Below, one piece after another: positions 6,650 through 61,859 of a stretch of DNA of 64,000 bases. The stretch comes from Octopus bimaculoides. Lineage: Eukaryota. The notes beneath the pieces are model-generated. The model had not been told where the DNA came from, did no database searches, and was given only the letters and a program-made list of their open reading frames with translations. Position 1 is the stretch's first letter. Each line of letters starts with the position of its first letter. The stretch is from positions 38,416,343-38,480,342 of the forward strand of contig NC_068994.1 of assembly GCF_001194135.2 (NCBI RefSeq), in the 5' to 3' direction. Made by a program: the position numbers and the translations under genes.

Positions 6650-6969
6650 TTAGTTTTGCACTGAAGATGGGGGAGGTACCTGTGATATTGAATGTACCTT
6701 TGGTAGTGTTGTTACTTTAGGTACAGCTGGTAGAGGTGGTTGACAGTTTGAAGTAAACTGACTTGTCATTGGCATTGAAGATGGTTGATCAGTTATGTCA
6801 GACGCGTTACCAGTTATATTCAAAGGTATTTGGTCATGGTAGGAGAAAGTGTTAGTGTCAACGTTTGGTTGATATTGATAGCCATTGTTATCTCCCCTTG
6901 ATCTGTTGAGCGTGTTTGGTGTTTGATTTCTCCTATTCCATGTGTGGTCACTTTGATAATGACGCAGAT
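6650..6969 (-). CDS. P2 terminal cytoplasmic exon 4 (DLRHYQSDHTW...PPLPAVPKVTTLPKV...VQN*); full P2 ~953 aa
   Basis: tatttctag|AT acceptor, phase 1 (G|AT=Asp), open to TAA at 6650. Homologous exons occur in P3-P6. Confidence 0.88.
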
Positions 6970-7827
6970 CTAGAAATAGATTGATTTTTAGGAAGTAAAT
7001 GTGGTAGAAGTTATACTGAATCAATTTTTAACGTTCATGAACACAACTGTATTTTAAGCACTTTTAGACCATACAGTGCTAATAATTTTGTGCATAGTTC
7101 CCAGGTTTGGCAGAATATCATTTTGTAATGCCACTGATAATTAACAAGAACTAAAATTGTTATCTTTTTTGCTTAACTTGTTTGTTGAACCATAACCATA
7201 CACCAAAATATTACTAAAATATATTTAAAATGTTAGTGAGTATATATTCATAAAAAAAAAACACTACTACAATTAATTTCAAAGTAAATGTTCCTTGTTC
7301 GAATCCAGTCCAGTATTACATGTATATTCAGAAATTAAACACTTGATCACTCAAATTAAACTAATCAAAACACCAAAATATAATGTATGTATAGCCAAAG
7401 CAGTCTCACACAGAAATGAGTATCACTTAATAATAACATGTATCATGATTTCACTTGATGCTGTTATGAGCAGGCACAGACAATATCTTGGCCCTCCTAC
7501 CCATTGAGCTAATGGAACATTAGAGATGTGATAGGTAAAGAGAGCAATGGCTACATTAGCACTTGCATGGTACTCATTTCTGCTGAGTAGATGAGTGCAG
7601 CATTAAATTATATACCTTGTTCAAGGACACAAGACACTTTCTAGTACAGAAACTGGACCCATAACTTTATGATTTTGAGCCCAACATTCTGCTACTGGGC
7701 TATTAAAAAACGTTGGCTCTCTAAAGATAAATTTGATAGTCAAGAGTAATTATGACTGTATTAATAATACTCATCATCAGTAGCATACATGTTACTAATG
7801 TAGAAACATTCAGTGTCTCTAACTTAC

Positions 7828-7978
7828 CTGGCAATTCTTCATAATGTCCAGCACTGCCGACACTCCATCTATGACCACTATCAATGTGAGATGACAATGT
7901 TGACCTCTCACTGAATCGGTCAGTACCATTAAGTTCTCTGTAACCTGGAGACATACTTTCTTCTCTTGAAACAAACAT
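7828..7978 (-). CDS. P2 cytoplasmic exon 3 (151 nt, MFVSREESMSPGYREL...GHYEELP)
   Basis: ctatccag|ATG acceptor and CCAG|GTAAGT donor. Homologous 151-nt exons recur in P3-P6, and the phase matches exon 2. Confidence 0.88.
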
Positions 7979-8501
7979 CTGGATAGAATTACATAAATCC
8001 AGTGTATCATCATAAAGTTTTACACTTATAAAATTAAACAAATACACAGCACAAGAGTTTAAACATGATATTAAAATATATGTTGGACTGTTTTTAACAT
8101 TTATAGAATAAATATACTTTTACTTTATGACACAGATATGACCATATCATAGAATATACAACATAGAAATAAATTTCATAATCATCAAAGAAAGCAACTG
8201 CATTGTGAATTTTACAATATTTGTTTTGCTTTATTTTATTTTTTTATTTTTTATATTTTTTGTTTTTGTTTTGGAAACAATCTATTAGATTTATTTAGAT
8301 TCAGTATTATATAACTACAACTAATAATTGTTTAGTTACTTTTCATTGATATTCAGGATCATGAAAAGTATTTTAAAGAATAAGGATTACATGAGAATAC
8401 TTTTACACAATAAGGAATTTAGTTTTGATTTTGGCAAAAGAAACAGAAGATGTATGATATTTTGCATTCAATTGTTTTAAGAAGTCTATCAATTATCTTA
8501 C

Positions 8502-10892
8502 CTGTGCATGAGGTCTTAAAACTGAGTGATCCCATCTATCACTTGCCGTGGTTCTATAGTGAAATTCTTCTGTATCTACTGATGGTTGTTGAGATTTCTT
8601 CAGATTTCTCTCCATTGCGTACTGAACTCCAGGAGGAACACAAGTAGGATCAAATATATATTTTGATTGTACGCTTAATGTAGGTGTCACTGTGTGGTAC
8701 ATATCAACACTACTATCATAGTTGCTATCTGTCTGCTTCAGTCTATGAACTATACAGATTGATATAGAGATTACTATAACAACTGACACAATCACAGCTG
8801 CTATAACAATAGCAATCATCACACTAGACTGGAGACCATTACTTGATTCTGTTGTTGTCTTTGAAGGGGTCTTAAATATCTTTGATGTGTTGTTACTAAC
8901 TGTTAGAGTCAAAGACAATGTTGTTGTCGATGACAGAACTGGACTGCCACTGTCTTTCACACCTAATTCCAGTTCATAGAATCCAGCATCGTTTTGGTAA
9001 GGTGAGCGAGAGAAAGATAAGGCACCAGAGTGATGGTTCATTTCAAATAAGTTTTTCTCATTTCCTCTGAGTATTTCATATGTGAGGAAGGCATTGTGTT
9101 GACTGTCTCTGTCAGAGGCCCTAACAACTGTGATATCATGGTCAGAGCGGGGATGGTAGTGGACATTAAGACTGAAAGGGTTAACATTAGGGAAACTGAA
9201 ATAGGGAGCATTATCATTTAAATCTATAACCTCAACAACAACATTTGCTGTGTTCTCCAGTGATGGTGTTCCTTTATCTTTTACTAAAACCTTAAACTCA
9301 TACATGTTCTTTTCTTCTCTGTCTAGTGACTCAGTTGTGGAAATAAATCCCACATCAGATATCTGAAATGGTAGAGTATCTTTTCCATTCGTCAACAGAG
9401 AATAGGTTAATTGTCCTCCATCTCCAGTATCTGGGTCTGTAGCATCAACATATCCCACAGGGAAGTCTTTGTGTTCATTTTCATAGGTGAGGAACTTATA
9501 TATGTCTTGAATAAACTGAGGTTGTACATCATTTATGTCAGTAACCAGCATAGAAAACTGTTTCTCCACTGTCAATGGAGGTAAACTATTATCTTGACAT
9601 TTAATGGTGAAATTTAATCTCTTCTCACTCTCTCTATCTATTTCACTCTTGACAACAACTTTGTATTTCTTTCCAGACAATGAAATTAGCTTAAGGTATT
9701 TATTTTGTAAATGACACTTCACTTGTCCATTTACTCCACTGTCATTGTCAGTAACTTTCACATAAGCAACAAAGCTGTGAATTTGAGTTCCTTCTGAGAT
9801 GACAGCTGTGTTTCCAGTTGACTCTAAGATAAATTTGACATCAATGTTTGGTGGATTGTTAAGGTGACTCATTCCATTAATAAGAACAGTGACAACAGAG
9901 GTCATTGGTGGTTTACCTTTATCACTGGCTTCAATGAATACTTCATAAAATTTTCGAAACTGAAATTCTTTTTTCAAAAATAGCTCTCCTGATGTTTGAT
10001 TTAAAATAAAGAATTTCATATCTTTTTCTGAAGTAAGAGGACTAAAATTATATACAATCGCTCCATTATCACCTTTGTCTAAATCCATTGCTGATAAAAT
10101 GACAATAGGTTTAGTTCTCTCTTGTGTCTCATTTACTGTCACCTTGTAGATATTCTGGGAAAATACAGGAGCATTGTCATTTTTATCTTCTACTAATATC
10201 CTTAAATCCATTAGCCCTTTCTTAGAATGAGATCCCCCATCTGTAGCAATTATTTGAAGATTATAAGTTTCCTTTCTCTCTCTGTCTAATCGTTTCACTA
10301 AAAGCAATTCAATTTTACTTTTCCTATTAGAAACTTTTGAGACCGACAATTGAAAAGTATTTTCCTGGTTATTCCTCAGTTGATAAGAAATATTTGAGTT
10401 CTGAATAGTGACATCTTTATCAAAGGCATTTGGAATGATCTCTTTTATTCCTTTTGGGGTACTTTCATCAAAGAGGATATGAAATTCCTTATCTGGAAAT
10501 ATGGGATAATTATCATTGACATCTTCTATCATAACTTTGATTTCTAATAACTTGATAAAAGAATGGCCATGCTGAACTGCTATTTCCAATATCCTGAAAC
10601 ATTCCACATTATATTGACACAGAGTTTCTGCATCCAATATGACAGCTGTATATAGTTGTCCTCCAGATGTAACATTGAATAACTGAACATCTCTGTCAGT
10701 ACTATGCTGCAGTATTTTAAATGAAAATTTGTTGCTATCATCCTGAGACTGTATATTATCCAGTAAGTTTGTATCACTGACAATATCTCCAATATAGCTG
10801 TGTCTATCATTGTTCTCTTTCACATGGAAGATATGATCTACACACCAGCATCTGTTAGCCATCAGGAGCACCAACATTATCATTAACAACAT
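8502..10892 (-). CDS. Protocadherin P2, large exon (SP, EC1-EC6, TM, juxtamembrane)
   Basis: Uninterrupted 799-aa ORF with six cadherin repeats and a TM. Acceptor ttttcag| (exon starts 10923), ATG at 10892, donor CAG|GTAAGA at 8502 (phase 0). Confidence 0.95.
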
Positions 10893-12807
10893 GGCTGATA
10901 TCTTATGTGTAAGTGTAAACGAGCTGAAAAGAAATCAAATATATAAAAAAAAAGATGGTATATTATCTCTAGTTTACATATTTATGTTATTTATTTTGAG
11001 TACTATATTCATATGAACTTCCTTTTGGCATATTATATAACTATGCAGATGTAACAATGGAATCATTTATAAAATTAAAAATATCTACAATGACAACTTT
11101 GTTTCTTTTGTTCTTTTTTTTTTCAATTATACATCATTATTGTTGTTGTCAAAATGATCTATTTTTAACTTACTTGGCTAGAAGCAAATGATGTAAGATT
11201 CAGTAGAGACTTCGTCTTAGAAATCATATATTAACTACATAACATGAAAGTAACACAACAAGATCATAAATTCAAAAGTACTCCCTCCTCTTCAAATACA
11301 TTTTAATCCTATATATCAGAGAGAATAAAGTTAACTTCCTTCCATTCCAATGCATATTATCGATGAATTATTTTCAACCTGCCTGTCAGACACTTTAGTA
11401 TGAAGCAGACTTACTTGTCTTTGGCCAGAATAGTTTATCTCTGAATTCTCCCATTTAAACATTAGTCATTTATTTTGCCCAGACAGGTTCCCTCTCATGC
11501 TCAAACCTAATTATGTCCTGTGTAACAGCTATGCCATATTTGATTAGAAACGAAGTATTCTTCAACTTCTGTGGGACACAAAGCACCTCTCTCTTGCCTG
11601 TTTCCCTTTGCCTCATCCTCAACATATCTCTGATCTACCTCCAAGACTCACCACCACATTTCATTTTCCATCAATGACTCTCAGGATTTCTTTTCACCCA
11701 TGTCTTTTCCTGTCCCCTTTTTCTCACAACTTCTGCCCATATTTGCCCTCATATAGTGTTAGATAACCTTAGACATCCTTCCCTTGACACAACCCACACT
11801 ATGTCCTTTCAACTCCGTCCCTCCTTGTGTTACCAATCCCTTTCCGCTTCCTTGTTTCTCCTCTCCCCCTCATTTCCTTTTACATAACCTCCCTCAGCCT
11901 TCCATCTAGGACATCTCTCACTCTCTTTTGTTCTCCTTCAGATATGGGGGCCACTTTCTGCCTTTAGCCTTGCAAGTCACTACATGATCATCACTCTTGT
12001 TGGTATCATGTAAAAAGCATCCAGTACCCTCTGTAAAGTAGTTGGTGTAAGGACATCTGGCCATATAAAGCATACTAAAGTGAACACTAATACATGATAT
12101 AGTCCTCTGACTTGTCAGACCCTGTCTAATCTCTGTCAGTATGGAAGCTTGACATTAAGTTGATGATGTTTTATTTGAAGTGAAACAAAAGTTTGTCACC
12201 ATTCTTCAAATATTACAAACTGTTATAGCTTAGAACTGACACAAACTTGGAATGTATTCTAATGACAACTATTTATTTTATGTACTGGCTAGTTCACAAC
12301 CTAAGAGAAACAACCTCATCTTTATCTGTTGCCCCAACACCTGGTCCATGTATGCCAGTAGTAGAGCTCACTCAGTTGCAAGCATTCAGTAATGTCTCCA
12401 TTTTGAGGATAAGTTACTCCAACAAGTCTAGAAGGTACTGAAAAAAGTGGGCCAAGTGGTGCGGTCCCCTCTTTCTCAGATGAAGCAGTTAAATAAACAA
12501 ATGAATAATCAAGTAAATAATCTTAATAGTCAATTATATCACTATTTTTGCCTGAGTCTACTCCTACATTAGTAATAACATAGGATAAAGATATTCTAAA
12601 TATTATACAAAAAAAAGCTAATTATATTAGTATTCATTTCTCATCTTATAATAAATAAATATCTATATAAAATATATTCTATAAGAGCCAATTCATGACT
12701 TTACCAAACTGTCTGAGCTAGTGAAATCACTTTAGTAAGACTTTTGCAGAAAGATGTTGCTAAATGTCTATATAAGTAATTTACATATAGTAGAAACTTC
12801 TAAAAAT

Positions 12808-13070
12808 ACTTACCAATAGTTGTCTATTGTATATACTGTTGTTATTGTACAGTTTCAATGTTCTGGTAACAAAGTGTTGTAGTAGTAGCAGGAGTTCTGA
12901 GTAGTTTGGTATGTAATAGTGTTATATAGTTCTATGAAGTTGGTTGTGTAGTATGTAATGTGTGTTGTAGCCAATGACAAGTTGTCTATTATTTCAATGC
13001 AAGGAAACGGAAATACAGCCTCCAGTTCTTGCAATTAATGATGGGCTGCCTCACAGACTAGTTTACTAAC
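12808..13070 (-). promoter_or_regulatory. Putative promoter + non-coding exon 1 of P2
   Basis: Same block; donor at 12814; AP-1-like site altered to TGCCTCA, ETS-like CGGAAAT. Confidence 0.72.
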
Positions 13071-15153: not shown

Positions 15154-15476
15154 TTAGTTGTTTAGTGTAGATAGAATAGGTACCTGAGGTACTGAAGGTA
15201 CCTTTGGTAGTGTTGTTACTTTAGGTACAGCTGGCAGAGGTGGTTTACAGTCTGAAGTAAACTGACTTGTCATTGGTGCTATAGATGGTTGTTCAGTTAT
15301 GTTAGATGTGGTACTAGATATAGTCAAAGGCACATGGTCAGGATAACAGGAAGTGTTTGAGTCAATATAAGATTGATATTTATAGCCATTGTTGTTATCT
15401 CCCCTTGATCTATCAAGTGTGTGTGGAAGTCGATTCCTCCTACTCCATGTGAGATCACTTTGGTAACGGCATAGAT
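15154..15476 (-). CDS. P3 terminal exon 4 (DLCRYQSDLTWSRRN...KPPLPAVPKVTTLPKVP...LNN*); full P3 ~955 aa
   Basis: Not in the ORF track; translated by hand from atttccag|AT to TAA at 15154, in frame. Confidence 0.87.
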
Positions 15477-16023
15477 CTGGAAATATATTGGTTTATAAAC
15501 CATTTAAAATGCATTCTATACAATATGAACTGGAATTTCATTTCTAAGTTATGTCCATATCGAACCTTTGTTTACACATATCCATATATTGTTGAAACGG
15601 TGTATAAGTAGATATAAGTAATCATAAGATTGTTTACGTAAATTGACTGATTTTTCAGGAATGGAAACTTCAGTTTATAAAGGATCATTTTAAAAGATTT
15701 TTAAAGAGAAACCAAGCTGCACTATTCTTATATAACCACTTTTTTTATTTTCATTTTTAACTTCCTTATTGTGTGAAAGTTTTCAGACTATGTTGGCAAT
15801 CCTAAAGAAAATTTTCAAGTATAGAAGCATAAATCTGTCAGAAAACTTATAAGAAATTGCATTGTAATGCATGAAAAAGGAAAATATTCTCGATATATAT
15901 AAACAACAAACAAACAAAATAAAACAAGATGCTGTTTAAAAAATATATAGCCGTGACAATGGAATCTTTTTGTTGGCTAATGTTGTTAAGGCCATTCTAA
16001 GATTCTTCTGAATAGACTAAATA

Positions 16024-17302
16024 TTAGGTCGTCAAGTATGAAATTTGTAGTAAGTTAATGGTAAACTTTGACAGCTGCACATTTTGCGCCATTATTATAT
16101 TTTGACAATCATTATTTTTTCTTAGAAAGTTGGAACATCTATTTCTTTATTCCAACTAATTTTGCACTTTATAAGGTATTTATAAATCGATTTTTTGCTA
16201 TTTTTGTTTAGATATGGATAAGTCGGAAATTCGTACAGTTTTGAAATATGGATTCTTTCTTGGAAATGCAGCATCACAGACAGCTCGGAATATTAATGGA
16301 GTATTTCATTCTAATGTTATTACACAGCAGACAGTATCAAATTGGTTTGCAAAATTTCATTCTGGTAACTTTGACCTCACAAATGAGCAATGTGGTCAAC
16401 CAGAAACAAAGGTGGATAGCGACAAACTGAAAGCCATCGTCGAGATAGATCCATCTCAAAGTGCCCGTAATTTATCATTGTTATTTGGTGTTAGCAAGCA
16501 AACAATATTGACTCACCTAGTTCAAATCAGTAAGGTGAAAAAGCTGGATAAGTGGGTTCCACATGAACTCAATGAAAATCAAAAGCAGCAACGTTTGGAA
16601 GCCTGCATTATGCTATTTTCTCATCACAATAATGAATCATTTTTTAATCGAATTGTAACATGTGATGAGAAATGGATCGAATGCAACAACCATAAATGTT
16701 CAGCACAATAGTTGGACAAAGACAAACCACCAAAATACAGGCCAAAATGCAAAATTCATCAAAAGAAGCTGATGGTGTGTGTTTGGTGGTCTGGCACAGA
16801 TGTGATCTATTATGATTTCATTAAACCGGGCTCGTCAATCATAGCCGAAGTATACTGCAGCCAAATGGACCAAATAATGCAGAAACTTACAAAAAAACAG
16901 CCTAGATTACTCAACAGATCCACTCCTATTTTATTGTAAAAAAAACGCCAGACCACACATCATAAAAGTGACTTTGGTGAAACTACAGAGTTGGAAGTTT
17001 TCCATCATCCACCATATTCACCTTATCTTGCCCCCACTAACTACCGCTTCTTCCAGAATTTGTATAACTTTCTTATAGAAAAAAAATTTTATTCTGACAA
17101 TGCTGTAAAACAAGCCTTCCAAGATTTTATTGACTCTAGATTATCAGGTTTTTACAGTTTCAGGCTGGACAAGATACCACTGAAATGGCAAAAGTGTCTT
17201 GATAATATGGGTGCATACTTTAATGAATAAAATTATTCCTTGTAGTTATAAAACATTAGCAAACTTTTTTCTTTTCTACAAATTTCATACTTGACGACCT
17301 GA
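16024..17302 (+). mobile_element. Full-length (1279 bp) mariner DNA transposon, inactive, in P3 intron 3
   Basis: 27-bp TIRs (ttaggtcgtcaagtatgaaatttgtag, one mismatch at the right end), TA flanking both ends, internal transposase. Confidence 0.93.
16214..17230 (+). pseudogene. Mariner (D,D34D-type) transposase pseudogene
   Basis: Motifs KLDKWVPHEL, VTCDEKWI, MVCVWW, HPPYSP.LAP. In-frame TAG at 16709-16711, stop and A-run at the HDNA motif (~16937), third catalytic D appears as N. Confidence 0.9.
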
Positions 17303-18557
17303 TATAATCTTCAAACACAAGACATAACACAGAAAGTAATTTGCTTGGAGAAAGTACAATTCAGGAAAAAATACACTGAACAAAACAAAAAAGTTCCTCT
17401 TTTACATGGATACAGGTTTCACAAAAACATACAGCAATTTTAGACTGAATATGGAAACTGTTTGTAATATTTGACATCTCCTGAAAGGTTCACTATGATA
17501 TAGAGATTCCATGAGTCCATTACATCTTAGAACTTAATTCAAAAGGCAACCTCTAATTTGTTCTATAGAACAAGTATTGTAAAAAAGATAGCTTTCTAGT
17601 ACTCACATCATTTCTCTTCCTCTTGATGGCAGTTTTCAAAAACAAAATCTCAGTTGTACAGAGATGGTCATATCTACATTCAGACACATCTAAATACTAA
17701 CATCGAAACCTTCTTTACTCAAAGCTACAATCAAAATACCTCATATTCTTCTTCTTTTGACTTGCCTAGAGCATGACAATGGACATACTACATATCTCTT
17801 TAATTATAGAATTTGTAGTATTCTTCATAATTGTGTCTTTTGAAGCTGATAATAGTTGGGATTGCTGCTCTTTACAGAAATACTACAGCCATTGGTGTTC
17901 TTCCCTCATCATCAACCATTAAAGCACATGTTGCTTGATGAAACCAAGTAAATATCAGTATTAATTAATTACATCCCAGGACTTGAGTGTAACTAAGTTC
18001 TATCAACTCCAGAAGAATGAAAGGCTAAATTCTGAGTACAGATCTCATCAAGGTCAACTTGAGATTTGAACTCAGAATTTAATGGTCTATTTGGCATATT
18101 GTCTAACTGTCAAACAATTCTGCCAATGCACTGCTACTAGTGAAATCCCTATTTTACAAACCTAGAGTATTAATTTCTGCTAATCATAGAGATGTCAATG
18201 CACATGATAGAGAATGTTTTCAAAAACTGATAAATGACTTATAGTTAAAAAAGAGCCACTAAAACAGATTCTACTTCAGACTAAACAAGAATTTTTTAAG
18301 CTTCCAAGACTTCACTAGAGTGAATGAAGTTCACATGTCTTGGCAACACACAACTGATGTTAATGCTCAACAGACTTTGGAAATAAGGAGAAAAATGTCA
18401 AAAGTAAGAATAATATTGGGAAAATTTACTCAACGTATTTCCATGTTCTATATTGACTATGAACGTCTAAGCTATACATGCATGCATGTTTAGATACACA
18501 CATACTTACATATGCCATGTTGTAGTGTTGCACAAATATCTAGTGTTCCTAACTTAC

Positions 18558-18708
18558 CAGGCAGTTCCTCATAATGTCCAGTACTACCGACATTCCAGCC
18601 TTGACTGCTATCTGTGTGAGATGACAATGTTAACATCTCACTGAATTGGTCAGTACTGTTTAATTCTCTGTATCCTGGAGACATACTTTCTTCTCTTGGA
18701 GTGAATAT
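18558..18708 (-). CDS. P3 cytoplasmic exon 3 (151 nt, IFTPREESMSPGYREL...GHYEELP)
   Basis: ctatttag| acceptor, CCTG|GTAAGT donor, paralogous to P2 exon 3. Confidence 0.88.
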
Positions 18709-19016: not shown

Positions 19017-21410
19017 CTGTTCACATGGTTCAGTGAAAGCTGAATTACCCCATCTATCACATAACGCAGTTCTGCAGTGAATATCTTCCATGTCCACCGT
19101 TGGTTGTTGAGATTTGGTCATGTTTCTCTCTACTGTGTACTGAACTCCAGGAAGAACACAAGTAGGGTCAAATGTATATTTTGATTGGATGTTTAATGTA
19201 GGTGTAACCTTGTGGTACATATCAACACTATTATCATGGTTGCTATCTGTCTGCTTCAGTCTATGAACTATACAGATTGATATAGAGATCACTATAACAA
19301 CTGATACTATCACAGCTGCTATAACAATAACAATCATCACATTCAATTGGAGACCATTACTTGATTCTGTTGTTGTCTTTGAAGGGGTCTTAAACAACTT
19401 TGATGTGTTGTTACTAACTGTTAAAGTCAAAGAGAAAGTTGTTGTTGATGACAGAACTGGACTGCCACTGTCTTTCACACCTAATTCCAGTTCATAGAAT
19501 CCAGCATCATTTTGGTAAAGTGAGCGAGAGAAAGATAAGACACCAGAGTGATGGTTCATTTGAAATAAGTGTTTCTCATTTCCTCTGAGTATTTCATATG
19601 TGAGGAAGGCATTGTGTTGACTGTCTCTGTCAGAGGCCCTAACAACTGTGATATCATGGTCAGAGCGGGGATGGTAGTGGACATTAAGACTGAAAGGGTC
19701 AACATTAGGGAAACTGAAATAGGGAGAATTATCATTTAAATCCATAACCTCAACAACAACATTTGCTGTGTTCTCCAGTGATGGTGTTCCTTTATCTTTT
19801 ACTAAAACCTTAAACTCATACATGTTCTTTTCTTCTCTGTCTAGTGACTCAGTTGTGGAAATAAATCCCACATCAGATATCTGAAATGGTAGAACATCTT
19901 TTCCATTAGATAATAGAGAATAAGTTAATTGTCCTCCATCTCCAATATCTGGGTCTGTAGCATTGACATATCCAACAGGGAAGTCTTTGTGTTCATTTTC
20001 ATAGGTGAGAAACTTAAATGTGTCCTGACTAAACTGAGGTTGTACATCATTTATGTCGGTAACCAACATTGAAAACTGTTTCCGTACTTTCAATGGAGAT
20101 AAACCATTATCTTGACATTTAATCGTGAAATTAAATCTCTTCTCACTCTCTCTATCTATTTCACTCTTGACAACAACTTTGTATTTCTTTTCAGATATTG
20201 AGATAAGCTGAAGGTATCTATTTTGCAAATGGCACTTCACATGTCCATTTACTCCACTGTCATTGTCAATAACTTTGACATAAGCAACAAAGCTGTGAAT
20301 TTGAGTTGCTTCTGAGATGACAGCTGTGTTTCCAGTTGTCTTTAAAACAAATTTAACATCAATGTTTGGTGGATTGTTAAGATGACTGACACCATTTACA
20401 AGAACAGTAGCTCTTGAAATTCTGTGAGGAATGCCATTATCTTTGGCTTCAATAAATAATTTATATAATTTTCCAAACTTATATTCTTTTGTCATAAATA
20501 ATTCTCCAGTTACTTTATCTAATCTGAACAGTGTTTTCATTGTTTCTGGTGTTTTAGAACTAATTATGTATGAAATTCTCCCATTTTCTCCCTCATCCAT
20601 GTCTGTAGCAGAAAAAATGAATATAGGTTTGTTTATTTGGTGCTTATCGTTTACTGTTATATTGTAGATACTCTGAGAGAATACAGGTGAGTTATCATTT
20701 TTATCTTTCACTAAGATATTTATATCCATTACACCTTCCTTTGGTGGTGTTCCCCCATCTGTAGCAACTAGTTGGATGTGATAATTAGATTTTGTTTCTC
20801 GGTCTAGCTTGTTTTCCAAAACTAACTCGAGTAAATCAGTTTCACTTAAATCATGTGATAAGACCAATTTAAAAGGAATATCTTCATCCTCTTTGAATTT
20901 ATAATTGATCATTGTGTTCTGAATACTGACATCTTTATCAATGGCATTTGGAAGTATTTCTTTTGTTCCTATCAATGCATTTTCCTCATATTGCAAGTGA
21001 AATTCCTTATTTGGAAATATGGGAGAATTATCATTGGCATCTTCTATCATAACTTTGACTTCCAATATTTTCAGAAATGAATGGCCATGCTGAACTGCTA
21101 TTTCCAATATCCTGAAGCATTCCACGTTATATTGACACAGGGTTTCTGCATCCAGCATGGCAGCTGTGTATATTTGTCCTCCAGGTGTAACATTAAATAA
21201 CTGAACATCTCCATCAGTATTACCATGGAGTACATTAAATGTCAGTTTGTTGTTGTTATCCCGAGACTGTATATTATCCAGTAAATGTATATCAGTGACA
21301 ATATCTCCAATGTAACTGTTTAAATCATTGTTCTCTTTCACATTATAAATATGATCCACACACCAGCAGCTCTCAGCCATCAACAGCACCAACAATACCA
21401 TTGACAACAT
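19017..21410 (-). CDS. Protocadherin P3, large exon
   Basis: Within the 845-aa ORF. Acceptor catttcag| (exon starts 21444), ATG 21410 (MLSMVLLVLLMAESCWC), donor CAG|GTAAGA at 19017. Confidence 0.95.
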
Positions 21411-21638
21411 GACTACAATCTTCAATTGTCTCTGATGTATTAATCTGAAATGGAAATAGATATATAGAGGATAACATTCAATATGCAGAATATATACCGA
21501 GATATTGCTTCCATACCAATACATCATAATTTATGTCAGAATATCAATCATCATCATTAGGTAGCATAAATTCTCACAAAATTTTCTCTTATTGATCAGT
21601 GACTATGAGAATAGTGAAAATTTGATTATCAGCTGATT

Positions 21639-22197
21639 ACATATATATATAAAAATGAAATTCAATCTTGCTTGCTTGCTTACAATGTTACACAGCCAAA
21701 CTGGTGCATAATGGGAAGATACTCCGAAAATAATTTAACCCAGACAGGGAAGAAACTCTAACCTTTCCCTTAGACACATTATGATGGGCAAAATATTTTA
21801 AAGTGAAACTGACTTTAAAAATACGGTAAGCATTTCGTAAAAAGATTTATTCGCAACTTGGTGTGAAATAGTTTTTTCCATAGGTTTCTTTCGAGTGCAT
21901 TCAACATATCTCACCTCCAAAGATTTGGCTGCTATTCCTAGCATGCTCTACAACCACATAGCAGCTATTTGCGATCAAAAGACACAAAATAACTGTTACA
22001 AGGTGGCTGGGCATGCAAGAAATAGCAGCCAAATCTTTCCTTTTTCTGGGGAAAGGAACTGTTTACGCATGATTTCGATGTCACATTCATTGAAAGCATG
22101 TGAAATATCATGGAAAAGAAAAAAACTCACAAAACAAAACTCCATTGCTAGGAAACTCGGACTTCCCCGGTGACCCAACGAGTCATGGGTAGTCTAG
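21639..22197 (+). mobile_element. Probable non-autonomous Helitron
   Basis: Starts with an ATATATATAAAAATGAAA-type head; ends with hairpin ACCCA-acgagtca-TGGGT followed by CTAG|T. Confidence 0.5.
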
Positions 22198-23062: not shown

Positions 23063-23468
23063 GGCGCAGGAGTGGCTGTGTGGTAAGTAGCTTGCTTACC
23101 AACCACATGGTTCCGGGTTCATTCCCACTGCGTGGCACTTTGGGCAAGTGCTTTCTACTATAGCTTCAGGCCGACCAAAGCCTTGTGAGTGGATTTGGTA
23201 GATGGAAACTGAAAGAAGACCGTCGTATATATGTATATGTATATATATGTGTTTGTGTTTGTCCCCCCCCCCACACACACACACATTGCTTGACAACCGA
23301 TGCTGGTGTGTTTATGTCCCTGTAACTTAGCGGGTCAGCAAAAGAGACCGATAGAATAAGTACTAGGCTTACAAAGAATAAGTCCTGGGGTCGATTTGCT
23401 CAACTAAAGGCGGTGCTCCAGCATGGCTGCAGTCAAATGACTGAAACAAGTCAAAGAGTAAAGAGAGA
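23063..23468 (+). mobile_element. tRNA-derived SINE family B
   Basis: Head GGCGCAGGAGTGGCTGTGTGG..GGTTCATTCC, internal TA/TG microsatellite, AG-rich tail. Further copies or fragments at ~37760, 42040, 43480, 53232, 61600. Confidence 0.8.
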
Positions 23469-46110: not shown

Positions 46111-46493
46111 GGAGGTGCAATGGCCCAGTGGTTAGGGCAGCGGACTCGCGGTCATAGGATCGCAGTTTTGATTCCCAGACCGGGCGTTGTGAGTGTTTAT
46201 TGAGCGAAAACGCCTAAAGCTCCACGAGACTCTGGCAGGGGATGGTGGCGAACCCTGCTGTACTCTTCCACCACAACTTTCTCTCACTCTTACTTCCTGT
46301 TTCTGTTGTGCCTGTAATTCAAAGGGTCAGCCTTGTCACACTGTGTCATGCTAAATATCCCCCGAGAACTACGTTAAGGGTACACGTGTCTGTGGAGTGC
46401 TCAGCCACTTGCACGTTAATTCCACAAGCAGGCTGTTCCGTTGATTGGATCAACTGGAACCCTCGACGTCGTAAGCAATGGAGTGCCAACAAC
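46111..46493 (+). mobile_element. tRNA-derived SINE family A (copy 2), P5 intron 2
   Basis: Colinear with 32812-33197. Confidence 0.82.
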
Positions 46494-48580: not shown

Positions 48581-51153
48581 CTGATTGTTTTCTCTTGAAG
48601 CCTGATCATCCCATCTATAAGACATAGTTCTGCAGTGAATATTGTCTCTGTCTACTATTGGTTGTTGAGATTTCTTCACATTTCTCTCCACTGTGTACTG
48701 AACTCCAGGAGGAACACAGGTAGGGTCAAATGTATAATTTGATTGGATGTTTAATGTAGGTGTAACTTTGTGATACATATCAACACTGTTGTTATAGTTG
48801 CTATGTGTCTGCTTCAGTCTATGAACTATACAGATTGATATAGAGATCACTATAACAATTGATACTATCACAGCTGCTATAACAATAACAATCATCACAT
48901 TAAATTGGAGGCCATTACTTGATTCCAGTGTTGTCTTTGAAGGTGTCTTAAACATCTTTGTGTTGTTACTAACTGTTAGAGTCANNNNNNNNNNNNNNNN
49001 NNNNNNNNNNNNNNNNNNNNNNNNNNNNNNNNNNNNNNNNNNNNNNNNNNNNNNNNNNNNNNNNNNNNNNNNNNNNNNNNNNNNNNNNNNNNNNNNNNNN
49101 NNNNNNNNNNNNNNNNNNNNNNNNNNNNNNNNNNNNNNNNNNNNNNNNNNNNNNNNNNNNNNNNNNNNNNNNNNNNNNNNNNNNNNNNNNNNNNNNNNNN
49201 NNNNNNNNNNNNNNNNNNNNNNNNNNNNNNNNNNNNNNNNNNNNNNNNNNNNNNNNNNNNNNNNNNNNNNNNNNNNNNNNNNNNNNNNNNNNNNNNNNNN
49301 NNNNNNNNNNNNNNNNNNNNNNNNNNNNNNNNNNNNNNNNNNNNNNNNNNNNNNNNNNNNNNNNNNNNNNNNNNNNNNNNNNNNNNNNNNNNNNNNNNNN
49401 NNNNNNNNNNNNNNNNNNNNNNNNNNNNNNNNNNNNNNNNNNNNNNNNNNNNNNNNNNNNNNNNNNNNNNNNNNNNNNNNNNNNCCATAACCTCAACAAC
49501 AACATTTGCTGTGTTCTCCAGTGATGGTGTTCCTTTATCTTTTACTAAAACCTTAAACTCATACATGTTCCTTTCTTCTCTGTCTAGCGACTCAATTGTA
49601 GAAATAAATCCCACATCAGATATCTGAAATGGTAGAATATCTTTACCATTCGTCAATAAAGAATAGGTTAATTGTCCTCCATCTCCAATATCTGGATCTG
49701 TAGCATCAACATATCCCACAGGGAAGTCTTTGTGTTCATTTTCATAGGTGAGAAACTTAAATATGTCCTGACTAAATTGAGGTTGGACATCATTCGTGTC
49801 AGTGACCAGCATTGAAAATTCTTTCTCTATTGTCAATGGAGGTAAACCATTATCTTGACATTTAATGGTGAAACTAAAGCTCTTTTCACTCTCTCTATCT
49901 ATTTCACTCTTGACAACAACTTTGTATTTCTTTTCAGACATTGAGATTAGCTGCAGGTATTTATTTTGTAAATGACACTTCACTTGTCCATTTACGCCAT
50001 TGTCATTGTCAATAACTTTGACATAAGCAACAAAGCTGTGAATTTGAATTGCTTCTGAGATGGCCGTTTTGTTTCCTGCTGACTTTAAAACAAATTTTAC
50101 ATGAATTTTTGGTGGACTATTAAGGTAACTGACCCCATTAATAAGGATGGTGGCTGTTGAAGACATAGGTATTTTTCCATTATCCGTGGCTTCAACAGAC
50201 AATTTATAGATTTTTCCAAATTCAAATTCTTTCTTTACAAATAATTCTCCAGATGTTTGATTTAAAATAAAGAATTTCTTATCTTTATCTAAGGTATCAG
50301 GACTGAATGTATATAGAATTTGTCCATTAGTACCCTGGTCTACATCTGTGGCAGTTAAATTTAAAATAGGTTTGTACAAATCCTGTGTATCTTTTACTGT
50401 GACATTATAAATACTTTGGGAGAACACAGGTGCATTGTCATTTTTATCTCTTACTAAAATATGTATCTCCATACCTGCTTGTTTTGGAGGGGATCCTCCA
50501 TCTGTAGCCATTAGATGAAGATAATAATTTTTCTTCATTTCTCTGTCTAGTTTTCCATTCAGAATTAATTCGATCTTACTTTTCCGGTCAGAAACTTCTA
50601 TTACCATTAACTGGAAAGTATTATTATTATTATTCCTCAGTTCATAAGAAAGCTTTGAGTTCTGAATACTGACATCTTTGTCAATGGCATTTAAAACTAT
50701 TTCTTTTGTTCCAATCAATACGTTTTCATCATATTGCAGGTGAAATTCTTTCTCTGGAAATATGGGATAATTGTCATTGACATCTTCTATCATAACTTTG
50801 ATTTCTAATATTTTGGTAAAAGAATGACCATGGTGAACTGCTATTTCCAATATCCTGAAACAATCCACATTATATTGACAAAGAATTTCTGCATCCAATA
50901 TGGCAGCTGTGTACAGTTGTCCTCCAGGTGTAACATTAAATAACTGAATAGTTCCATCAGTGCTACCCTGGAGTATATTAAATGTCAGTTTGTTGCTGTT
51001 GTCTTGAGACTGTATATTATCCAGTAAGTGTGTATCAGTGACAATATCTCCAATATAGCTGTGTGTGTCATTGTTCTCTTTCACATGGTAGATATGATCC
51101 ACACACCAGCAACTTTCTTCCATTAACAACATCAACAATATTAAGGTAAACAT
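48581..51153 (-). CDS. Protocadherin P5, large exon; N-gap 48985-49484 covers EC6
   Basis: ORFs 48982..51204 and 48572..48955. Acceptor catttcag| (exon starts 51185), ATG 51153, donor CAG|GTAAGA at 48581. Substituting the P2-equivalent 312 nt for the gap gives 2385 nt (795 codons, in frame). Confidence 0.92.
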
Positions 51154-51580
51154 ATCTTCAATTTTCTTCAATATATTCCACTGGTCTGAAATGGATATGT
51201 ACACAGGAAATAAATATGATAGATGTGGTTAGACTTTTCTAATGTAATTATATAAAAATAAATTATGCATACTGTAGTAAGGTTAAAGTAATCTGAACCA
51301 AAAAAAAAAAATTACAGAATATATTAATACTTTTGTCTTGATAAATATAATCATGATAATATAGAAGCTACAGTATATAATGCTGTTAATTACGGAGAAT
51401 TAAGAAATTTTACAACGATGAAGAATAACATTTAGCTAATTATTTGGATATCTTTCAATTGTAAAAGACTTTTCTGGATGTCAGAATCATGCTTTTCTCT
51501 TTGATATTCTAATAGCTTTCTGACACTCTTACAACACTTATGTGAATGATATATGTATACTGTCGCACATATATCAGCAG

Positions 51581-53389: not shown

Positions 53390-53428
<39 letters not shown>

Positions 53429-54378: not shown

Positions 54379-54640
54379 ACTTACCAAGTTGTTTATTAAT
54401 GCTGCCAGTCGTTTCTACAGTTGCTACTGTACTGTTCCAGTGTTCTGGTAACAAAGTTGTAATAATAACAGGAGCTTGGTATGTGACACTGTTATATAGT
54501 TCTATGAAGTTGCTTGTGTAGAATGTAATGTGTGTTGTGGCCAATGACAAGCTGTCTTTTATTCCAATGCAAGGAAACGGAAGTACAGCCTCCAGCTCTT
54601 GAAGTAAATGATGGGCTGACTCACAGACAAGTTTACTTCC
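54379..54640 (-). promoter_or_regulatory. Putative promoter + exon 1 of P5
   Basis: Same block; donor TTG|GTAAGT at 54385; motifs intact. Confidence 0.72.
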
Positions 54641-55874
54641 ACCCCACACATACATAAGTGTGTTTGTGTGAACATATGGAGTATATAATTTATGAGTATG
54701 ATTTATGAAAACGTTAGTGTGCAGAACATTGTGGTCAAACACTAAATAAATGCTGAAAAATGTTATTATGAAATACTTGAATGTATTTTAATTATCAATG
54801 AAAATAATTGCTATTTCATGATTTAAGTAAAAGTTATAAAGCTTTTTGTAAGTCAAGTTTTTAATTTTCTATTGACTCAACATAACTTTTTACTCACCAA
54901 ATCTATAATATCAGTTTTAAAGTATTTTTAGAGTGGTTTATCTCATTATTAAATTACTGAAATACTTACAAAATTGTAGATTATATTAAAAGTGACATGC
55001 TTATAGTGAGAATATGAATAAATGGAATATCTCACTAACAGATTTCGAAAAAGAATTATATCAGAATTTTGCATCTTTTGTACAATGAAATTTTTTGGTC
55101 CAAATTCTATGTCTATGAAGTTTTTAACATATTTTGCTGTTTTAAATTAGTTGAACAAATGCATGTAAAAAAAATATATATTTAGCTCTGTCTATTAATT
55201 GATTTATCACGTATTGATTTATCATGTAAGATTAATGAAGAAAGATAAAAATTTACTTTTTTCTAATGAAATATTACATCACTTCTTAAAATATTTGTAA
55301 TGGAGACTAATAAAGATGTACTATTTCATTCTAAAACTTGAGTTTGAGAAACATATCTATCTTGTCTCTGAAAGGCTTCCATAAATTGTTGCTTAAATTG
55401 CTCTAATATCAATTATTTAAATTACAATTATAACAATTAAAAACTAGACAGTTGGAGATTCATTCTCTTTAGTAACTATCCAACTCAAAATAGTAACTTA
55501 GAAAAAATTCTATTAGTGTAAAAATTATGTCTTGCAAGAAATTTCATTTAACTGTTCTAGACAAAAATTGTACTTCTAAGCCATTAAAGAATAAATAGTT
55601 CGCTATCATGACACAGAAGATAAATATGGATATATACCATGTGTTTGCTTCAGTAGTTACTGTTATTTAACTATTGTGATAAATTTAGTGCATTAAAGAT
55701 GCATGAAATTAATCTCAAACTTGCTTGTACCACATCAGCTAAAACTATAAAAAAAAAAATGTAATTCTTAATAACATTGTTATATTTAAACAAAGTGCCC
55801 ATTAATATTTTTCAGGCACTTTAGGTATTGTTTTGTTTGTATTCATTGTTGTTATTTTTTTTTAAAGTATGGAG

Positions 55875-56182
55875 TTAGTTTAGTGTTGGTACAGGGGGTA
55901 CTGGAGGTACCTTTGGCAGTGTTTTTACTTTTGGTACAGCTGGTAGAGGTACTTTACTACTTGAAGTAAAGTCGTTTGTCATTGCTACTGTAGATGGATG
56001 TTTAGTTATGTTCGATGTGGTCCCAATTATTGTCAAGGGTATTTGACCATGATGATAGGAAATGTCACTGTCAACGTCTGGTTGAAAGGGATAGCCATTG
56101 TTATCTCCCTTTAATCTGTTCAGTGTGTATGGAAGCCGATTTCTCCTAATCCATGTAAGGTCACTTTGGTAACGGCACAGAT
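55875..56182 (-). CDS. P6 terminal exon 4 (DLCRYQSDLTWIRRN...VPLPAVPKVKTLPKVPPVPPVPTLN*)
   Basis: gttttcag|AT acceptor, translated by hand to TAA at 55875. Confidence 0.87.
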
Positions 56183-56340: not shown

Positions 56341-56727
56341 TGTTGCTGGCACTCCGTCGCTTACGACGTCGAGGGTTCCAGTTGATCCAATCAACGGAAC
56401 AGCCTGCTCGTGAAATTAACGTGCAAGTGGCTGAGCACTCCACAGACACGTGTACCCTTAACGTAGTTCTCGGGGATATTCAACGTGACACAGTGTGACA
56501 AGGCTGACCCTTTGAATTACAGTACAGGCACAACAGAAACAGGAAGTAAGAGTGAGAGAAAGTTGTGGTGAAAGCGTACAGCAGGGTTCGCCACCATCCC
56601 CTGCCGGAGCCTCGTGGAGCTTTAGATGTTTCGCTCAAAAAAGACACACAACGCCCGGTCTGGGAATCGAAACCGCGATCCTATGACAGCAAGTCCGCTG
56701 CCCTAACCACTGGGCCATTGCACCTCC
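56341..56727 (-). mobile_element. tRNA-derived SINE family A (copy 3), P6 intron 3
   Basis: Reverse complement of 32812-33197. Confidence 0.82.
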
Positions 56728-56893
56728 ACGCATTGAGATATACATAACAAAATATTTTTCTACCTTACGATAGATATCACAGAATGGAAAATGTGCTTTA
56801 GACAAAAAGCTTTGGTTTAAAAAGAACTTTAAAAATTTGATCATTAAAATAAAGCAACAATCACAGGAATGGAAACAAGACTTTATCACTTAC

Positions 56894-57044
56894 CTGGTAG
56901 TTCTTCATAGTGACCAGCACTACCAACACTCCAGCCATGGCCACTATCAGTATGAGATGACAATGTTGACATCTCACTGAATTGGTCAGGATTGTTTAGT
57001 TCTCTGTAACCTGGAGACATGCTTTCTTCTCTTGGAACAAATAC
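56894..57044 (-). CDS. P6 cytoplasmic exon 3 (151 nt, VFVPREESMSPGYREL...GHYEELP)
   Basis: aaatttag| acceptor, CCAG|GTAAGT donor; paralogous exon of identical length. Confidence 0.88.
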
Positions 57045-57627: not shown

Positions 57628-57661
<34 letters not shown>

Positions 57662-57809
57662 TGGGATGTCTTTCATGCAGTTTCTATTGGCCAAATTCAC
57701 TCACGATGCATTGGTCAAACTGGGCTTTAGTAATTAATACACATATTTCAACATTATAAGATGTTAAACACATATTTCAACATTATTAAATAACTGACAA
57801 ATATTTTAC

Positions 57810-60418
57810 CTCTGGATGTGTTTCAATGAAAGCTGGTTTACCCCATCTATCACTGCAGTGAACACCTTCTATATCCATCATTGGTTGTTGAGATTTGTTC
57901 ATGTTTCTCTCCAATGTGTACTGAATACCAGGAGGAACAAATGTATACTTTGGTTGGATGTTTAATGTAGGTGTAACCTTGTGGTACATATCAACACTAC
58001 TATTATAGTTGCTATCTGTCTGCTTCAGTCTATGAACTATACAGATTGATATAGAGATCACTATAACAATTGATATGATCACAGCTGCAACAACAATAAC
58101 AATCATCACATTCAATTGGAGACCATTACTTGATTCTGTTGTTGTCTTTGAAGGGGTCTTAAATATCTTTGATGTGTTGTTACTAACTGTTAGAGTCAAA
58201 GACAAAGTTGTTGTTGATGACAGAACTGGACTGCCACTGTCTTTCACACCTAATTCCAGTTCATANNNNNNNNNNNNNNNNNNNNNNNNNNNNNNNNNNN
58301 NNNNNNNNNNNNNNNNNNNNNNNNNNNNNNNNNNNNNNNNNNNNNNNNNNNNNNNNNNNNNNNNNNNNNNNNNNNNNNNNNNNNNNNNNNNNNNNNNNNN
58401 NNNNNNNNNNNNNNNNNNNNNNNNNNNNNNNNNNNNNNNNNNNNNNNNNNNNNNNNNNNNNNNNNNNNNNNNNNNNNNNNNNNNNNNNNNNNNNNNNNNN
58501 NNNNNNNNNNNNNNNNNNNNNNNNNNNNNNNNNNNNNNNNNNNNNNNNNNNNNNNNNNNNNNNNNNNNNNNNNNNNNNNNNNNNNNNNNNNNNNNNNNNN
58601 NNNNNNNNNNNNNNNNNNNNNNNNNNNNNNNNNNNNNNNNNNNNNNNNNNNNNNNNNNNNNNNNNNNNNNNNNNNNNNNNNNNNNNNNNNNNNNNNNNNN
58701 NNNNNNNNNNNNNNNNNNNNNNNNNNNNNNNNNNNNNNNNNNNNNNNNNNNNNNNNNNNNNNNNNNNNNNNNNNNNNNNNNNNNNNNNNNNNNNNNNNNN
58801 NNNNNNNNNNNNNNNNNNNCTCATACATGTTCTTTTCTTCTCTGTCTAGTGATTCAGTTGTGGAAATAAATCCCACATCAGATATCTGAAATGGTAGAAT
58901 ATCTTTTCTATTTGTCAATAGAGAATAGGTTAATTGTCCTCCATCTCCAATATCTGGGTCTGTAGCATTGACATATCCAACAGGGAAGTCTTTGTGTTCA
59001 TTTTCATATGTGAGAAACTTAAATATGTCCTGACTAAACTGAGGTTGTACGTCATTTATATCAGTGACCAGCATAGAAAATTCTTTCTCCACTGTCAATG
59101 GAGGTAAACCATTATCTTGACATTTAATGGTGAAATTAAATCTCTTCTCACTCTCTCTATCTATTTCACTCTTGACAACAACTTTGTATTTCTTTTCAGA
59201 CATTGAGATTATCTGCAGGTATCTATTTTGTAAATGACACTTCACTTGTCCATTTACTCCACTGTCATTGTCAGTAACTTTGACATAAGCAACAAAGCTG
59301 TGAATTTGAGTTGCTTCTGAGATGACAGCTGTGTTTCCAGTTGACTTAATTACAAATTTGACATCAATGTCAGGTCGATTGTTAATGTGACTGATTCCAT
59401 TTATTAGAATAAGGACTGTTGAAGACATTGAAGGAATACCATTATCTCTAGCATCAACAAATAATTTATAAATTCTTCCAAACTGAAAATTTTGCTTTAG
59501 AAACAATTCTCCTGTTGCTTCATCCAACTTAAACCAACGTTTTACAGTACCCAGTGTCTTGGCATTATTAAAGACATAAGAAATTCTTCCATTTTCTCCT
59601 TCATCTAAATCTGTAGCAGACAGCCTCAGAATAGGTTTGTTTATCTGGTGTGTATCATTTATAGTTACATTATAGATATTCTGAGAGAATATAGGAGAAT
59701 TATCATTTTCATCTTGCACTGATATTTCTATATTCAGTATGCCTTCTTTTGGTGGAGATCCTCCATCTTTGGCAATTAATTGAATATCATAAAGATCTTG
59801 TGTTTCACGATCTAAGTTTCCTTCCAGAATTAATTGTAGTACATCACTTCCATCTGATTTTTTAGTTACTAGAAGTTGAAATGGAATATCCACATTATTT
59901 TTTAATTTATAAGAAATCTTTGAATTCTCAATACTGACATCTTTATCAAAGGCATTTAGAATTCTTCCTTTTGAGTCTTTTGAATCACTTTCATCAAATG
60001 TTAAATGAAATTCTGTGTTGGGAAAAATAGGATAATTATCATTGACATCTTCTATTATAACTTTGATTTCTAATATCCTAATAACAGAATAGCCATGTTG
60101 AATGGCTATTTCCAATATCTTGTAACATTCCACATTATATAGACACAGGGTTTCTGCATCCAATATGGCAGCTGTGTACAGTTGTCCTCCAGGTGTAACA
60201 TTGAATAACTGAACAGTTCCCTCAGTACTACCCTGGAGTACATTAAATGTCAATTTGTTGCTATCATCCTTAGACTGTATATTATCCAATAAGTGTGTAT
60301 CAGTGGCGATATCTCCAATATAACTGTTTGTATCATTATTCTCTTTCACATAGTATGTATGATCTACACACCAACAGCTACCAGGCAGAAACAACATCAA
60401 CAATAACGCTGGGAACAT
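57810..60418 (-). CDS. Protocadherin P6, large exon; N-gap 58266-58819 covers end of EC5 and most of EC6
   Basis: ORFs 58250..60490 and 57786..58247. Acceptor ttttgcag| (exon starts 60425), ATG 60418, donor GAG|GTAAAA at 57810. Substituting the P2-equivalent 318 nt gives 2373 nt (791 codons, in frame). Confidence 0.92.
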
Positions 60419-61859
60419 TTTCTGTCTGCAAAAGAATTTTATAGGGAGATAAGCAAATGAAAACTTAATAAATGCACATAAATATAGCATAATATATAGT
60501 CCAATAACTTAACCACATTTGAGATATTGTTTACATGCTACAAGTAGTTAAATATCAACATCAAATATACAACTGGCAACAGTACTATGATACTATGTTG
60601 TAATTTGGTTAATTCACTGGAAATGAAAGTCACTAGACACATACGTTTTTCAGCCTTTACCTATTTAATATGACATCATTGATTACTGACTGATTGAATA
60701 ACATAGAATGATATACATAACTATTATATCACACAGTTTAACACTGGAACTATTATTTTTCCATATTCACATAAACTTTACTACCCCTTCACCATGTCTA
60801 ATCCTCTGAACCACTTCTCTTNNNNNNNNNNNNNNNNNNNNNNNNNNNNNNNNNNNNNNNNNNNNNNNNNNNNNNNNNNNNNNNNNNNNNNNNNNNNNNN
60901 NNNNNNNNNNNNNNNNNNNNNNNNNNNNNNNNNNNNNNNNNNNNNNNNNNNNNNNNNNNNNNNNNNNNNNNNNNNNNNNNNNNNNNNNNNNNNNNNNNNN
61001 NNNNNNNNNNNNNNNNNNNNNNNNNNNNNNNNNNNNNNNNNNNNNNNNNNNNACATAAACTTTACTACCCCTTCACCATGTCTAATCCTCTGAACCACTT
61101 CTCTTATTTTCACCTTTCTTTAACTTGGTGGTATGTATTCACAGCTCTTCACCATCTTTTATCTTCCAACCGAGGTAGCCATGTATCTCTTCTACTGCAA
61201 GTTGCCCTTTTCTGTTTCTTTATCATATTTTAACTGCTTGTCACCTGGCATAAAGCCACCTTTCTTAATACTCCACCTTGCCCATCAGCTGAAGGGTTTC
61301 GTCTTGCAAGTTACTTAATGAGCTCACTTGTGCAATGCTATATAAAATTTACTCAGTACACACTGTGAAGTGTCTGGCTTTAAGAAGAGCATCCAGCTGT
61401 AAAACTGTACCAAAGCAGAAACTGCCTTGTTGGCTCTTGCCAACCTGACCAACCAATGCACACATTGAAAACAGACATTAAATAACATCTACTAAAGAAA
61501 GCATTCTTTTTTTTTCCACAGATTTGGAATTATTAGTAATTCTAATGTAATTATGCATGTCAAATGTTGGATGACTCATTCTATTTTGAATGACGATTTC
61601 TTTTCTTTCTATCTTTTTACTTGTTTTGGTTATTAGACTGTAGCAATGCTGGGGCACTACCTTTAAGAATTGTTTGTCAAATGAATCGATCGCAGGACTT
61701 ATGTTTTTTTTAAGCCTGGCACTTATTTTATCAGTCTCTTTTGCTGAATCACTAAGTTATGGGGACATAAACACACTAACACCAGTTGTCAAGCAGTGGT
61801 GGGTGAGAAATACAGACATAATATATACATATATATATGTGTGTGTGTATGTGTATACA

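Follow-up and report, generated by a model that had tools for sequence, protein, structure and literature searches.

A tandem array of complete octopus protocadherin genes with phase-matched and, very probably, separately spliced cytoplasmic exons

Do the members of a tandem protocadherin array exchange their cytoplasmic exons, or is each of them spliced as a gene of its own? The question is raised by a 64-kb stretch of an Octopus bimaculoides chromosome (the window, by which we mean the whole of the DNA that was analyzed), which agrees letter for letter with positions ~38,416,343-38,480,342 of CM046614.1 in assembly GCA_001194135.2. On its minus strand lie six large open reading frames, P1 to P6, whose products all carry cadherin repeats and are ~70-77% identical to one another as proteins; they are arranged head-to-tail in a single orientation, at a spacing of 9-19 kb, and P2 to P6 each have exons 1 to 4. 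In the alpha and gamma clusters of vertebrates, variable exons are spliced to three shared constant exons. An initial annotation of the octopus locus had proposed that the matching splice phases of these units would allow ectodomains and cytoplasmic tails to be shuffled in read-through transcripts. We think it very probable that the locus consists of complete protocadherin genes, placed head-to-tail and each spliced separately, and that the in-frame interchangeability of their exons is a by-product of ancestry and not a working mechanism.

As a tandem array of complete protocadherin genes, the content of the window is already annotated and known. The Pfam Cadherin family is matched in five stretches (E=4e-71), and there is a further match to the CELSR2-like ninth-cadherin domain; a hydrophobic (transmembrane) segment, VMIVIVIAAVIVSVVIVISISICIV, follows, and after it comes a cytoplasmic tail of ~240 amino acids (aa), for which a Pfam search returned no match and in which no homology to vertebrate tail motifs was detected. 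For O. vulgaris, the motifs CM1-CM3 have been reported to be absent (PMC6339937). The closest protein matches are protocadherins of O. bimaculoides, O. vulgaris, O. sinensis, and Argonauta. Our model of P3, assembled from exons 2, 3, and 4, matches the RefSeq entry "protocadherin beta-3-like [Octopus bimaculoides]" (P0002) throughout its 955 aa (100% identity); the full P2 model of 953 aa equals UniProt A0A0L8H7U2 (P0009); the full P4 model, at 946 aa, has the length of the NCBI product at that place; and the part of P5 exon 2 that lies 3′ of an assembly gap, together with exons 3 and 4, equals UniProt A0A0L8H788. The match of P1 to UniProt A0A0L8H8R3 was judged by eye only. A protein search with the tail alone, in which 114 candidates were scored, yielded seven short O. 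bimaculoides and O. sinensis models that are informative for P5 and silent on chimeras.

Going by those portions of the literature that describe it, the locus is the protocadherin (PCDH) chromosome cluster of O. bimaculoides reported by Albertin et al. 2015 (as related in PMC6339937) and Albertin et al. 2022 (PMC9068888). A figure of 168 multi-exonic PCDH genes placed head to tail is cited in PMC6339937, and in cephalopods variable exons are said not to be spliced to shared exons, diversity arising from full gene duplication (PMC9068888). The exon-by-exon phases, the exon 3 of 151 nucleotides (nt), and the conserved core of exon 1 described below are details that we did not find spelled out in published descriptions of the cluster. 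P2 is missing from the genes called here in the NCBI record, despite having the highest RNA depth of the five units P2 to P6, clean splicing, and an intact 953-aa frame; the annotation, or else the index, may simply have left it out.

Comparison of the window with itself brings out four conserved blocks per unit: the large exon, one block of ~150 nt, one of ~320 nt, and one of ~290 nt upstream of the large exon. Copies of the exons were located within the window by tblastn, run at a lax threshold, and by blastn. By tblastn, exon 3 and exon 4 each occur five times and no more, one private pair for each of P2 to P6, and even at the lax threshold no orphan or shared copy of a cytoplasmic exon, and no truncated unit, was found in the window. 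The claim that the constant-like exons were duplicated along with each gene is borne out: every unit has one private set.

In P2 to P6, respectively, the large exon (exon 2) occupies 8502-10923, 19017-21444, 29291-31706, 48581-51185, and 57810-60425, all on the minus strand, and starts 7-34 nt before an ATG at 10892, 21410, 31687, 51153, or 60418. Its last base, the lower coordinate of each pair, always falls after a complete codon (phase 0), at a donor with the consensus (C/G)AG/GT(A/G)A (the slash between G and G marking the splice site). Exon 3, at 7828-7978, 18558-18708, 28605-28755, 44897-45047, and 56894-57044, is 151 nt long in all five units, is flanked by AG and GT, and is open in frame 0 only, so that it leads from phase 0 to phase 1. 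The coding part of exon 4, at 6650-6969, 15154-15476, 26731-27023, 44214-44521, and 55875-56182, starts at the upper coordinate, preceded by a polypyrimidine tract and AG, and in phase 1 it encodes a conserved peptide as far as a stop codon that ends at the lower coordinate. Its lengths, stop included (320, 323, 293, 308, and 308 nt), differ only by multiples of three. In P6 the large exon takes in ectodomain and transmembrane segment and runs into the tail; it has an acceptor ttttgcag/ACAG at 60425, a 7-nt leader, and a donor GAG/GTAAAA at 57810.

These are, to the base, the phases that the initial annotation had assigned to the large exon, exon 3, and exon 4 of P2 to P6, and its outer limits are likewise exact: the P2 stop codon finishes at 6650, and P6 exon 2 begins at 60425. 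When copies of exon 2, exon 3, and exon 4 drawn from P2 to P6 were joined in silico, all 35 of the 35 ordered combinations remained open to the native stop, as had been predicted for cross-combinations from exon 2 through exon 3 to exon 4. The companion prediction, that any exon 1 could be joined in frame to any exon 2, loses its meaning: exon 1 is non-coding, and the exon 1-exon 2 joint therefore has no frame to keep. Distance separates the two kinds of partner: from an exon 2 donor it is 308-3533 nt downstream to the unit's private exon 3 acceptor, versus at least 10 kb to a foreign one.

Whether these combinations are used is a matter for RNA. We compared contigs of three RNA runs (X1, X2, and X6) and raw reads of two others (X20 and X21) with the units. 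Nine joints were found, each within a unit. P2 has two (6969/7828 and 7978/8502, both in contigs of X1 and X2 and in raw reads of X20 and X21), and P3 has three (15476/18558, 18708/19017, and, between exon 1 and exon 2, 21444/24554, the last in X1, X2, and X6). Two more belong to P4 (27023/28605 and 28755/29291, in X1, X2, and X6), one to P5 (44521/44897, in X2 and X1), and one to P6 (56182/56894, in X2); a P5 exon 1 contig, moreover, departs at the predicted donor 54385. All 13 of the 13 raw junction reads are within-unit, and the X2 contigs that cross the P2 and P3 junctions have a depth of 131-212. The exon 2 donors represented in these joints (P2 to P4) and the exon 3 donors of all five units pair with acceptors of their own unit, 0.3-3.1 kb away, and the exon 4 contigs, where they were followed (P2 to P4), continue past the stop into the 3′ untranslated region (3′UTR). 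Run X18, a DNA run, covers the introns at even depth, as DNA should, and the P4 joints do not occur in it.

Among the joints and loose ends listed for the five RNA runs, there was no cross-unit joint and no foreign loose end at a boundary of exon 2, 3, or 4. In the narrow regions taken around P2 and P3, the letters beyond the exon boundaries belong to the unit's own partner exon or to the contig of a paralogue; other loose ends have no match anywhere in the window. The proposed shuffling of ectodomains and tails is thus left without a junction to represent it, every junction seen in the X1, X2, and X6 contigs and in the X20 and X21 reads being within-unit. Three candidates that looked foreign were traced and set aside: one loose end on P3 came from P2's own exon 4, another, on P3 exon 3, from P2's own exon 2-exon 3 junction contig, and a contig of X10 from a paralogue outside the window. 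In P2 intron 3, X2 cover over 6942-7632 amounts to ~5% of exon depth (9.8 versus ~200), which fits unspliced precursor or a low level of intron retention.

Why, then, do the phases agree? Between units the introns and 3′UTRs are 46-53% alike, which is the background of the alignment; identity rises to 82% in exon 3, 77% in exon 4, and about 80% in exon 1, and pairs of exon 3 copies differ from each other at 11-27% of the 151 positions. The ratio of nonsynonymous to synonymous divergence (dN/dS) in the tail is 0.33-0.49. A distant paralogue 1.1 Mb away (P0025, CM046614.1 ~39.58-39.65 Mb), 46% identical, keeps the three coding exons, with phase 0 at the end of exon 2 and phase 1 at the start of exon 4; its introns measure 34 and 29 kb, and its exon 3, at 145 nt, is again of length 3n+1. 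Since this paralogue has the same phases, the pattern is, judging from sequence comparison, ancestral to the octopus family and was copied at each duplication; the uniform 151 nt simply means that exon 3 has suffered no indel yet in this young sub-array. The agreement of phases is far beyond chance, but common descent explains it, and because the phases are inherited family-wide they do not testify to selection for interchangeability. Shuffling requires compatible phases, but their presence is no argument that it takes place. In two further O. bimaculoides members of the same sub-family, P0121 and P0122, which lie outside the window, the exon 4 peptides are nearly identical while the exon 2 tails and exon 3 differ, and this suggests a recent conversion or duplication confined to exon 4.

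In the reading that we favor, each unit consists of a non-coding exon 1 with its strongly conserved core, a large exon 2, and private exons 3 and 4 with a stop codon of the unit's own; signal peptide, cadherin repeats, transmembrane segment, and the beginning of the tail are all encoded by exon 2. The array very probably grew by whole-gene duplication, with the phases (0 after exon 2, 1 after exon 3) copied each time, and purifying selection on the tail would have kept exon 3 free of indels and allowed exon 4 in-frame indels only. We suspect that competition from the private acceptor, together with 3′ end formation in each unit, prevents long-range splicing of the vertebrate type. A foreign acceptor would lie not only farther away but also beyond a terminal exon and a 3′ end, and co-transcriptional pairing of neighboring sites may be what keeps the units apart.

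Several points weigh against an array of separately spliced genes and must be set beside it. The Logan contigs drop rare variants, and of each raw run ~6% was read; the wide regions listed the best-supported loose ends only, the narrow P2 and P3 regions nearly all; and the exon 2-exon 3 joints of P5 and P6 are not among the joints listed. Our own estimate, which is not a measurement, is that such data would still leave room for cross-unit events that are rare, making up a few percent or less. X2 cover is continuous, at a depth of 10-26, from P4 exon 4 (27023) to P3 exon 1 (24554), with introns at 0. Read-through PCDH fusions have been described in O. vulgaris (PMC9712504), and two annotated models of that species run across gene boundaries: in P0001 (1619 aa) two whole genes are fused, and P0004 (1091 aa), which models the P4 orthologue, joins its exon 4 to exons 3 and 4 of a truncated neighbor through a phase 0 donor, CAG/GTACCT, internal to exon 4 near its end. 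In the scheme of the initial annotation, read-through would allow exon 2 to be joined with exon 3 or 4 from a unit downstream, swapping tails and adding functional diversity. The 35 in-frame combinations, the tight packing of the units, the continuous P4-P3 cover, the exon 4 to exon 3 join of the O. vulgaris P4-orthologue model, and the read-through fusions in that species' annotation could all be brought forward for it; yet no cross-unit joint was seen in five RNA runs, the deep junction contigs of X2 included, private acceptors stand 0.3-3.5 kb from their donors versus at least 10 kb for foreign ones, the phases are equal by descent throughout the family, tail and ectodomain have stayed paired in the O. 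vulgaris orthologues, and the published fusions carry extra domains, not swapped tails. We consider this scheme very unlikely. Equally hard to credit is a restricted form of it, in which, in some neurons, a small and regulated fraction of read-through transcripts would use the phase-matched sites to attach a neighbor's cytoplasmic exons; the candidate donors would be those of exons 2 and 3 and the internal CAG/GTACCT of exon 4. If true, it would provide a second, combinatorial layer of protocadherin diversity, converging on the variable/constant logic of vertebrates.

Read-through itself is plausible; what is unsupported is the shuffling of ectodomains and tails. Low-level conjoined transcripts between neighbors would be non-productive, the stop of the upstream exon 4 being retained and no chimeric protein made, and we regard their occurrence as possible, although somewhat against the odds. 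They would account for the X2 cover between 27023 and 24554, where RNA continues from P4 exon 4 through at least ~2 kb of 3′UTR and, over ~2.2 kb in all, reaches P3 exon 1 at similar depth, and for that upstream of the P5 exon 1 donor, where a depth of ~13 is maintained over ~600 nt (54385-54996) and 1-3 to ~55360; read-through PCDH transcripts are also on record (PMC9712504). However, the libraries are unstranded and short-read, and a long P4 3′UTR or upstream P3 start sites could give the cover over 24554-27023 just as read-through could; between P6 and P5 cover drops to zero at 55364-55645; and the joints and loose ends listed, whose sensitivity to rare events is limited, include no splice from one gene to the next, which would define such transcripts. 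The truncated O. vulgaris unit (OX597827.1, ~7.01-7.04 Mb) lies between the P4 and P3 orthologues and has parts at 15239-15523, 17093-17538, 17995-18144, and 19183-19485 of locus L002, with a 3′ remnant of the large exon that contains a stop and a frameshift and with exons 3 and 4 that look intact; tblastn found no such remnant in the O. bimaculoides window. A further O. vulgaris model, P0012, ends in an exon just behind a neighbor's exon 1. We read the annotated models of that species as fusions or double tails and not as ectodomain/tail swaps, and between O. bimaculoides and O. vulgaris orthologues tails and ectodomains remain paired. A last alternative would place a shared constant region of the vertebrate kind farther downstream, beyond the window, and make the private exons no more than alternative ends. 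It was considered since the tail of P1 and whatever follows it lie outside the window, and nothing was found in its support; each exon 4 has a stop codon, RNA runs on into the 3′UTR in P2 to P4, the RefSeq and UniProt proteins end at the exon 4 stop, and shared final exons are absent from cephalopod genes as published (PMC9068888). We consider it extremely improbable.

With separately spliced genes as the favored reading, the array can be placed among known systems. It does not differ in kind from the tandem arrays of coleoid cephalopods, to which the same locus belongs: the genes are multi-exonic and head-to-tail, closely related sub-arrays occur, and there are signs of homogenization. Like the vertebrate alpha and gamma clusters, it lines up large ectodomain exons, and each of these apparently has a promoter or first exon to itself. 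Variable exons of those clusters have no private acceptor downstream. The octopus locus, in contrast, is without a shared constant region, each unit having private exons 3 and 4, its own stop and, where it was followed, its own 3′UTR, and the joints are within-unit. The vertebrate beta cluster is closer, being made up of complete tandem genes that lack constant exons and owe their diversity to gene number, as in the octopus. Beta genes are essentially single-exon; octopus units add a 5′ non-coding exon and two 3′ cytoplasmic exons. Wu and Maniatis reportedly described, in 2000, a general protocadherin plan, represented by the non-clustered delta-protocadherins, in which small cytoplasmic exons come after an ectodomain exon of unusual size; the octopus genes share it, with the ectodomain and transmembrane segment on the large exon and the rest of the tail on small ones. 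A likeness to conjoined transcripts ("tandem chimerism") lies in the close spacing of same-strand genes and possibly in the continuous P4-P3 cover, with fused models known from O. vulgaris, although no cross-gene joint was found among those listed for the window.

In a larger context, octopus and vertebrates expanded their protocadherins independently, the one by whole-gene duplication and the other by splicing to shared constant exons. For the cephalopod solution the window offers a clean example, verified by RNA, and it shows the reason, every large exon having its own acceptor close by. Cross-unit splicing, if true, would blur this contrast between vertebrates and cephalopods and multiply receptor diversity, and the present data give it no support.

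Upstream of the coding exons, exon 1 is a separate non-coding exon, with donors (TTG/GTAAGT) at 12814, 24554, 40679, 54385, and 63639. It is verified by RNA for P3 and in part for P5, and predicted in the other units. On the minus strand, it extends over 12814-13098 in P2 (predicted), 24554-24840 in P3, 40679-40904 in P4 (predicted), and 54385-54656 in P5, where the X2 contig leaves exactly at 54385; the 5′ limits in P3 and P5 are approximate. Its core, 120-130 nt long, is present in six minus-strand copies (5627-5753, 12929-13058, 24669-24798, 40780-40904, 54499-54628, and 63752-63881) that are 90-95% identical, with 95 of 130 columns invariant, and it is 88-94% identical in O. vulgaris, against non-coding flanks that are no more alike than background. 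Within the core there is an ATTGG (CCAAT) motif, and part of the core, at least, is transcribed; it is a candidate for a common promoter or 5′UTR control element. In role it may be likened to the promoter element of vertebrate Pcdh variable exons, but unlike that element it lies in or next to a separate 5′ exon and not immediately before the large exon.

Intron 1 of P4 (31707-40678) is ~9 kb long and contains three assembly gaps (at 34170, 38101, and 39634), versus 1.9-3.2 kb in the other units. The idea that the exon 1 at 40679 belongs to a unit lost in those gaps was rejected, for in the O. vulgaris P4 orthologue, too, intron 1 is long and the exon 1 core stands 7.6 kb upstream; the long intron looks real, and not like the trace of a lost unit.

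Two other gaps, 48985-49484 (500 N) and 58266-58819 (554 N), cut the large exons of P5 and P6. By tblastn, their flanks are colinear with P3 on both sides, 105 and 106 residues being missing, and the frames differ across the runs of N (-2/-1 in P5 and -1/-3 in P6), so the colinearity does not imply that these two large exons are intact. The sequence 3′ of the gaps reads in frame from the transmembrane segment to the donor, and the phase assignments are unaffected because only this sequence was used for them. All three of the gaps that fall inside large exons (these two and 1313-1438 in P1) lie in a stretch that is 95-97% identical between units, and this high identity is a likely cause of the assembly breaks. 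RNA contigs assembled from short reads are common to the paralogues in this stretch (depth up to 1,000, against ~130 in unique parts) and for that reason cannot bridge the gaps. Annotators of the cluster may find use in the exact exon and phase maps of the five genes, in the exon 1 core, and in the observation that assembly gaps fall in the homogenized part of the large exon.

Along their length, the large exons of P1 to P6 (e.g., 19017-21410 in P3) form a mosaic of conservation. Codons 151-350, about extracellular cadherin repeats 2 and 3 (EC2-EC3), are 66-75% identical, with a synonymous divergence (dS) near 1.0, and codons 351-700 are 90-97% identical, with dS near 0.22. The mosaic fits a homogenization of the membrane-proximal ectodomain by gene conversion, an interpretation drawn from the sequence comparison. 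In the clustered Pcdh genes of vertebrates, as in the octopus units, EC2-EC3 are diversified and the membrane-proximal ectodomain is homogenized.

The introns hold repeats of their own. A family of ~390 nt has three copies, at 32810-33194 (plus strand), 46105-46494 (plus), and 56341-56734 (minus), with ~93% identity, and other intronic repeats of high depth lie at 23060-23479, 47066-47389, 27920-28319, and 22080-22359. A scan for tRNA genes detected no tRNA-like part in these repeats. RNA contigs over the intronic repeats reach depths of 10^4-10^5; the repeats probably belong to interspersed elements that are abundant and transcribed in the octopus genome. A (TG)12 run is present at 25284-25308.

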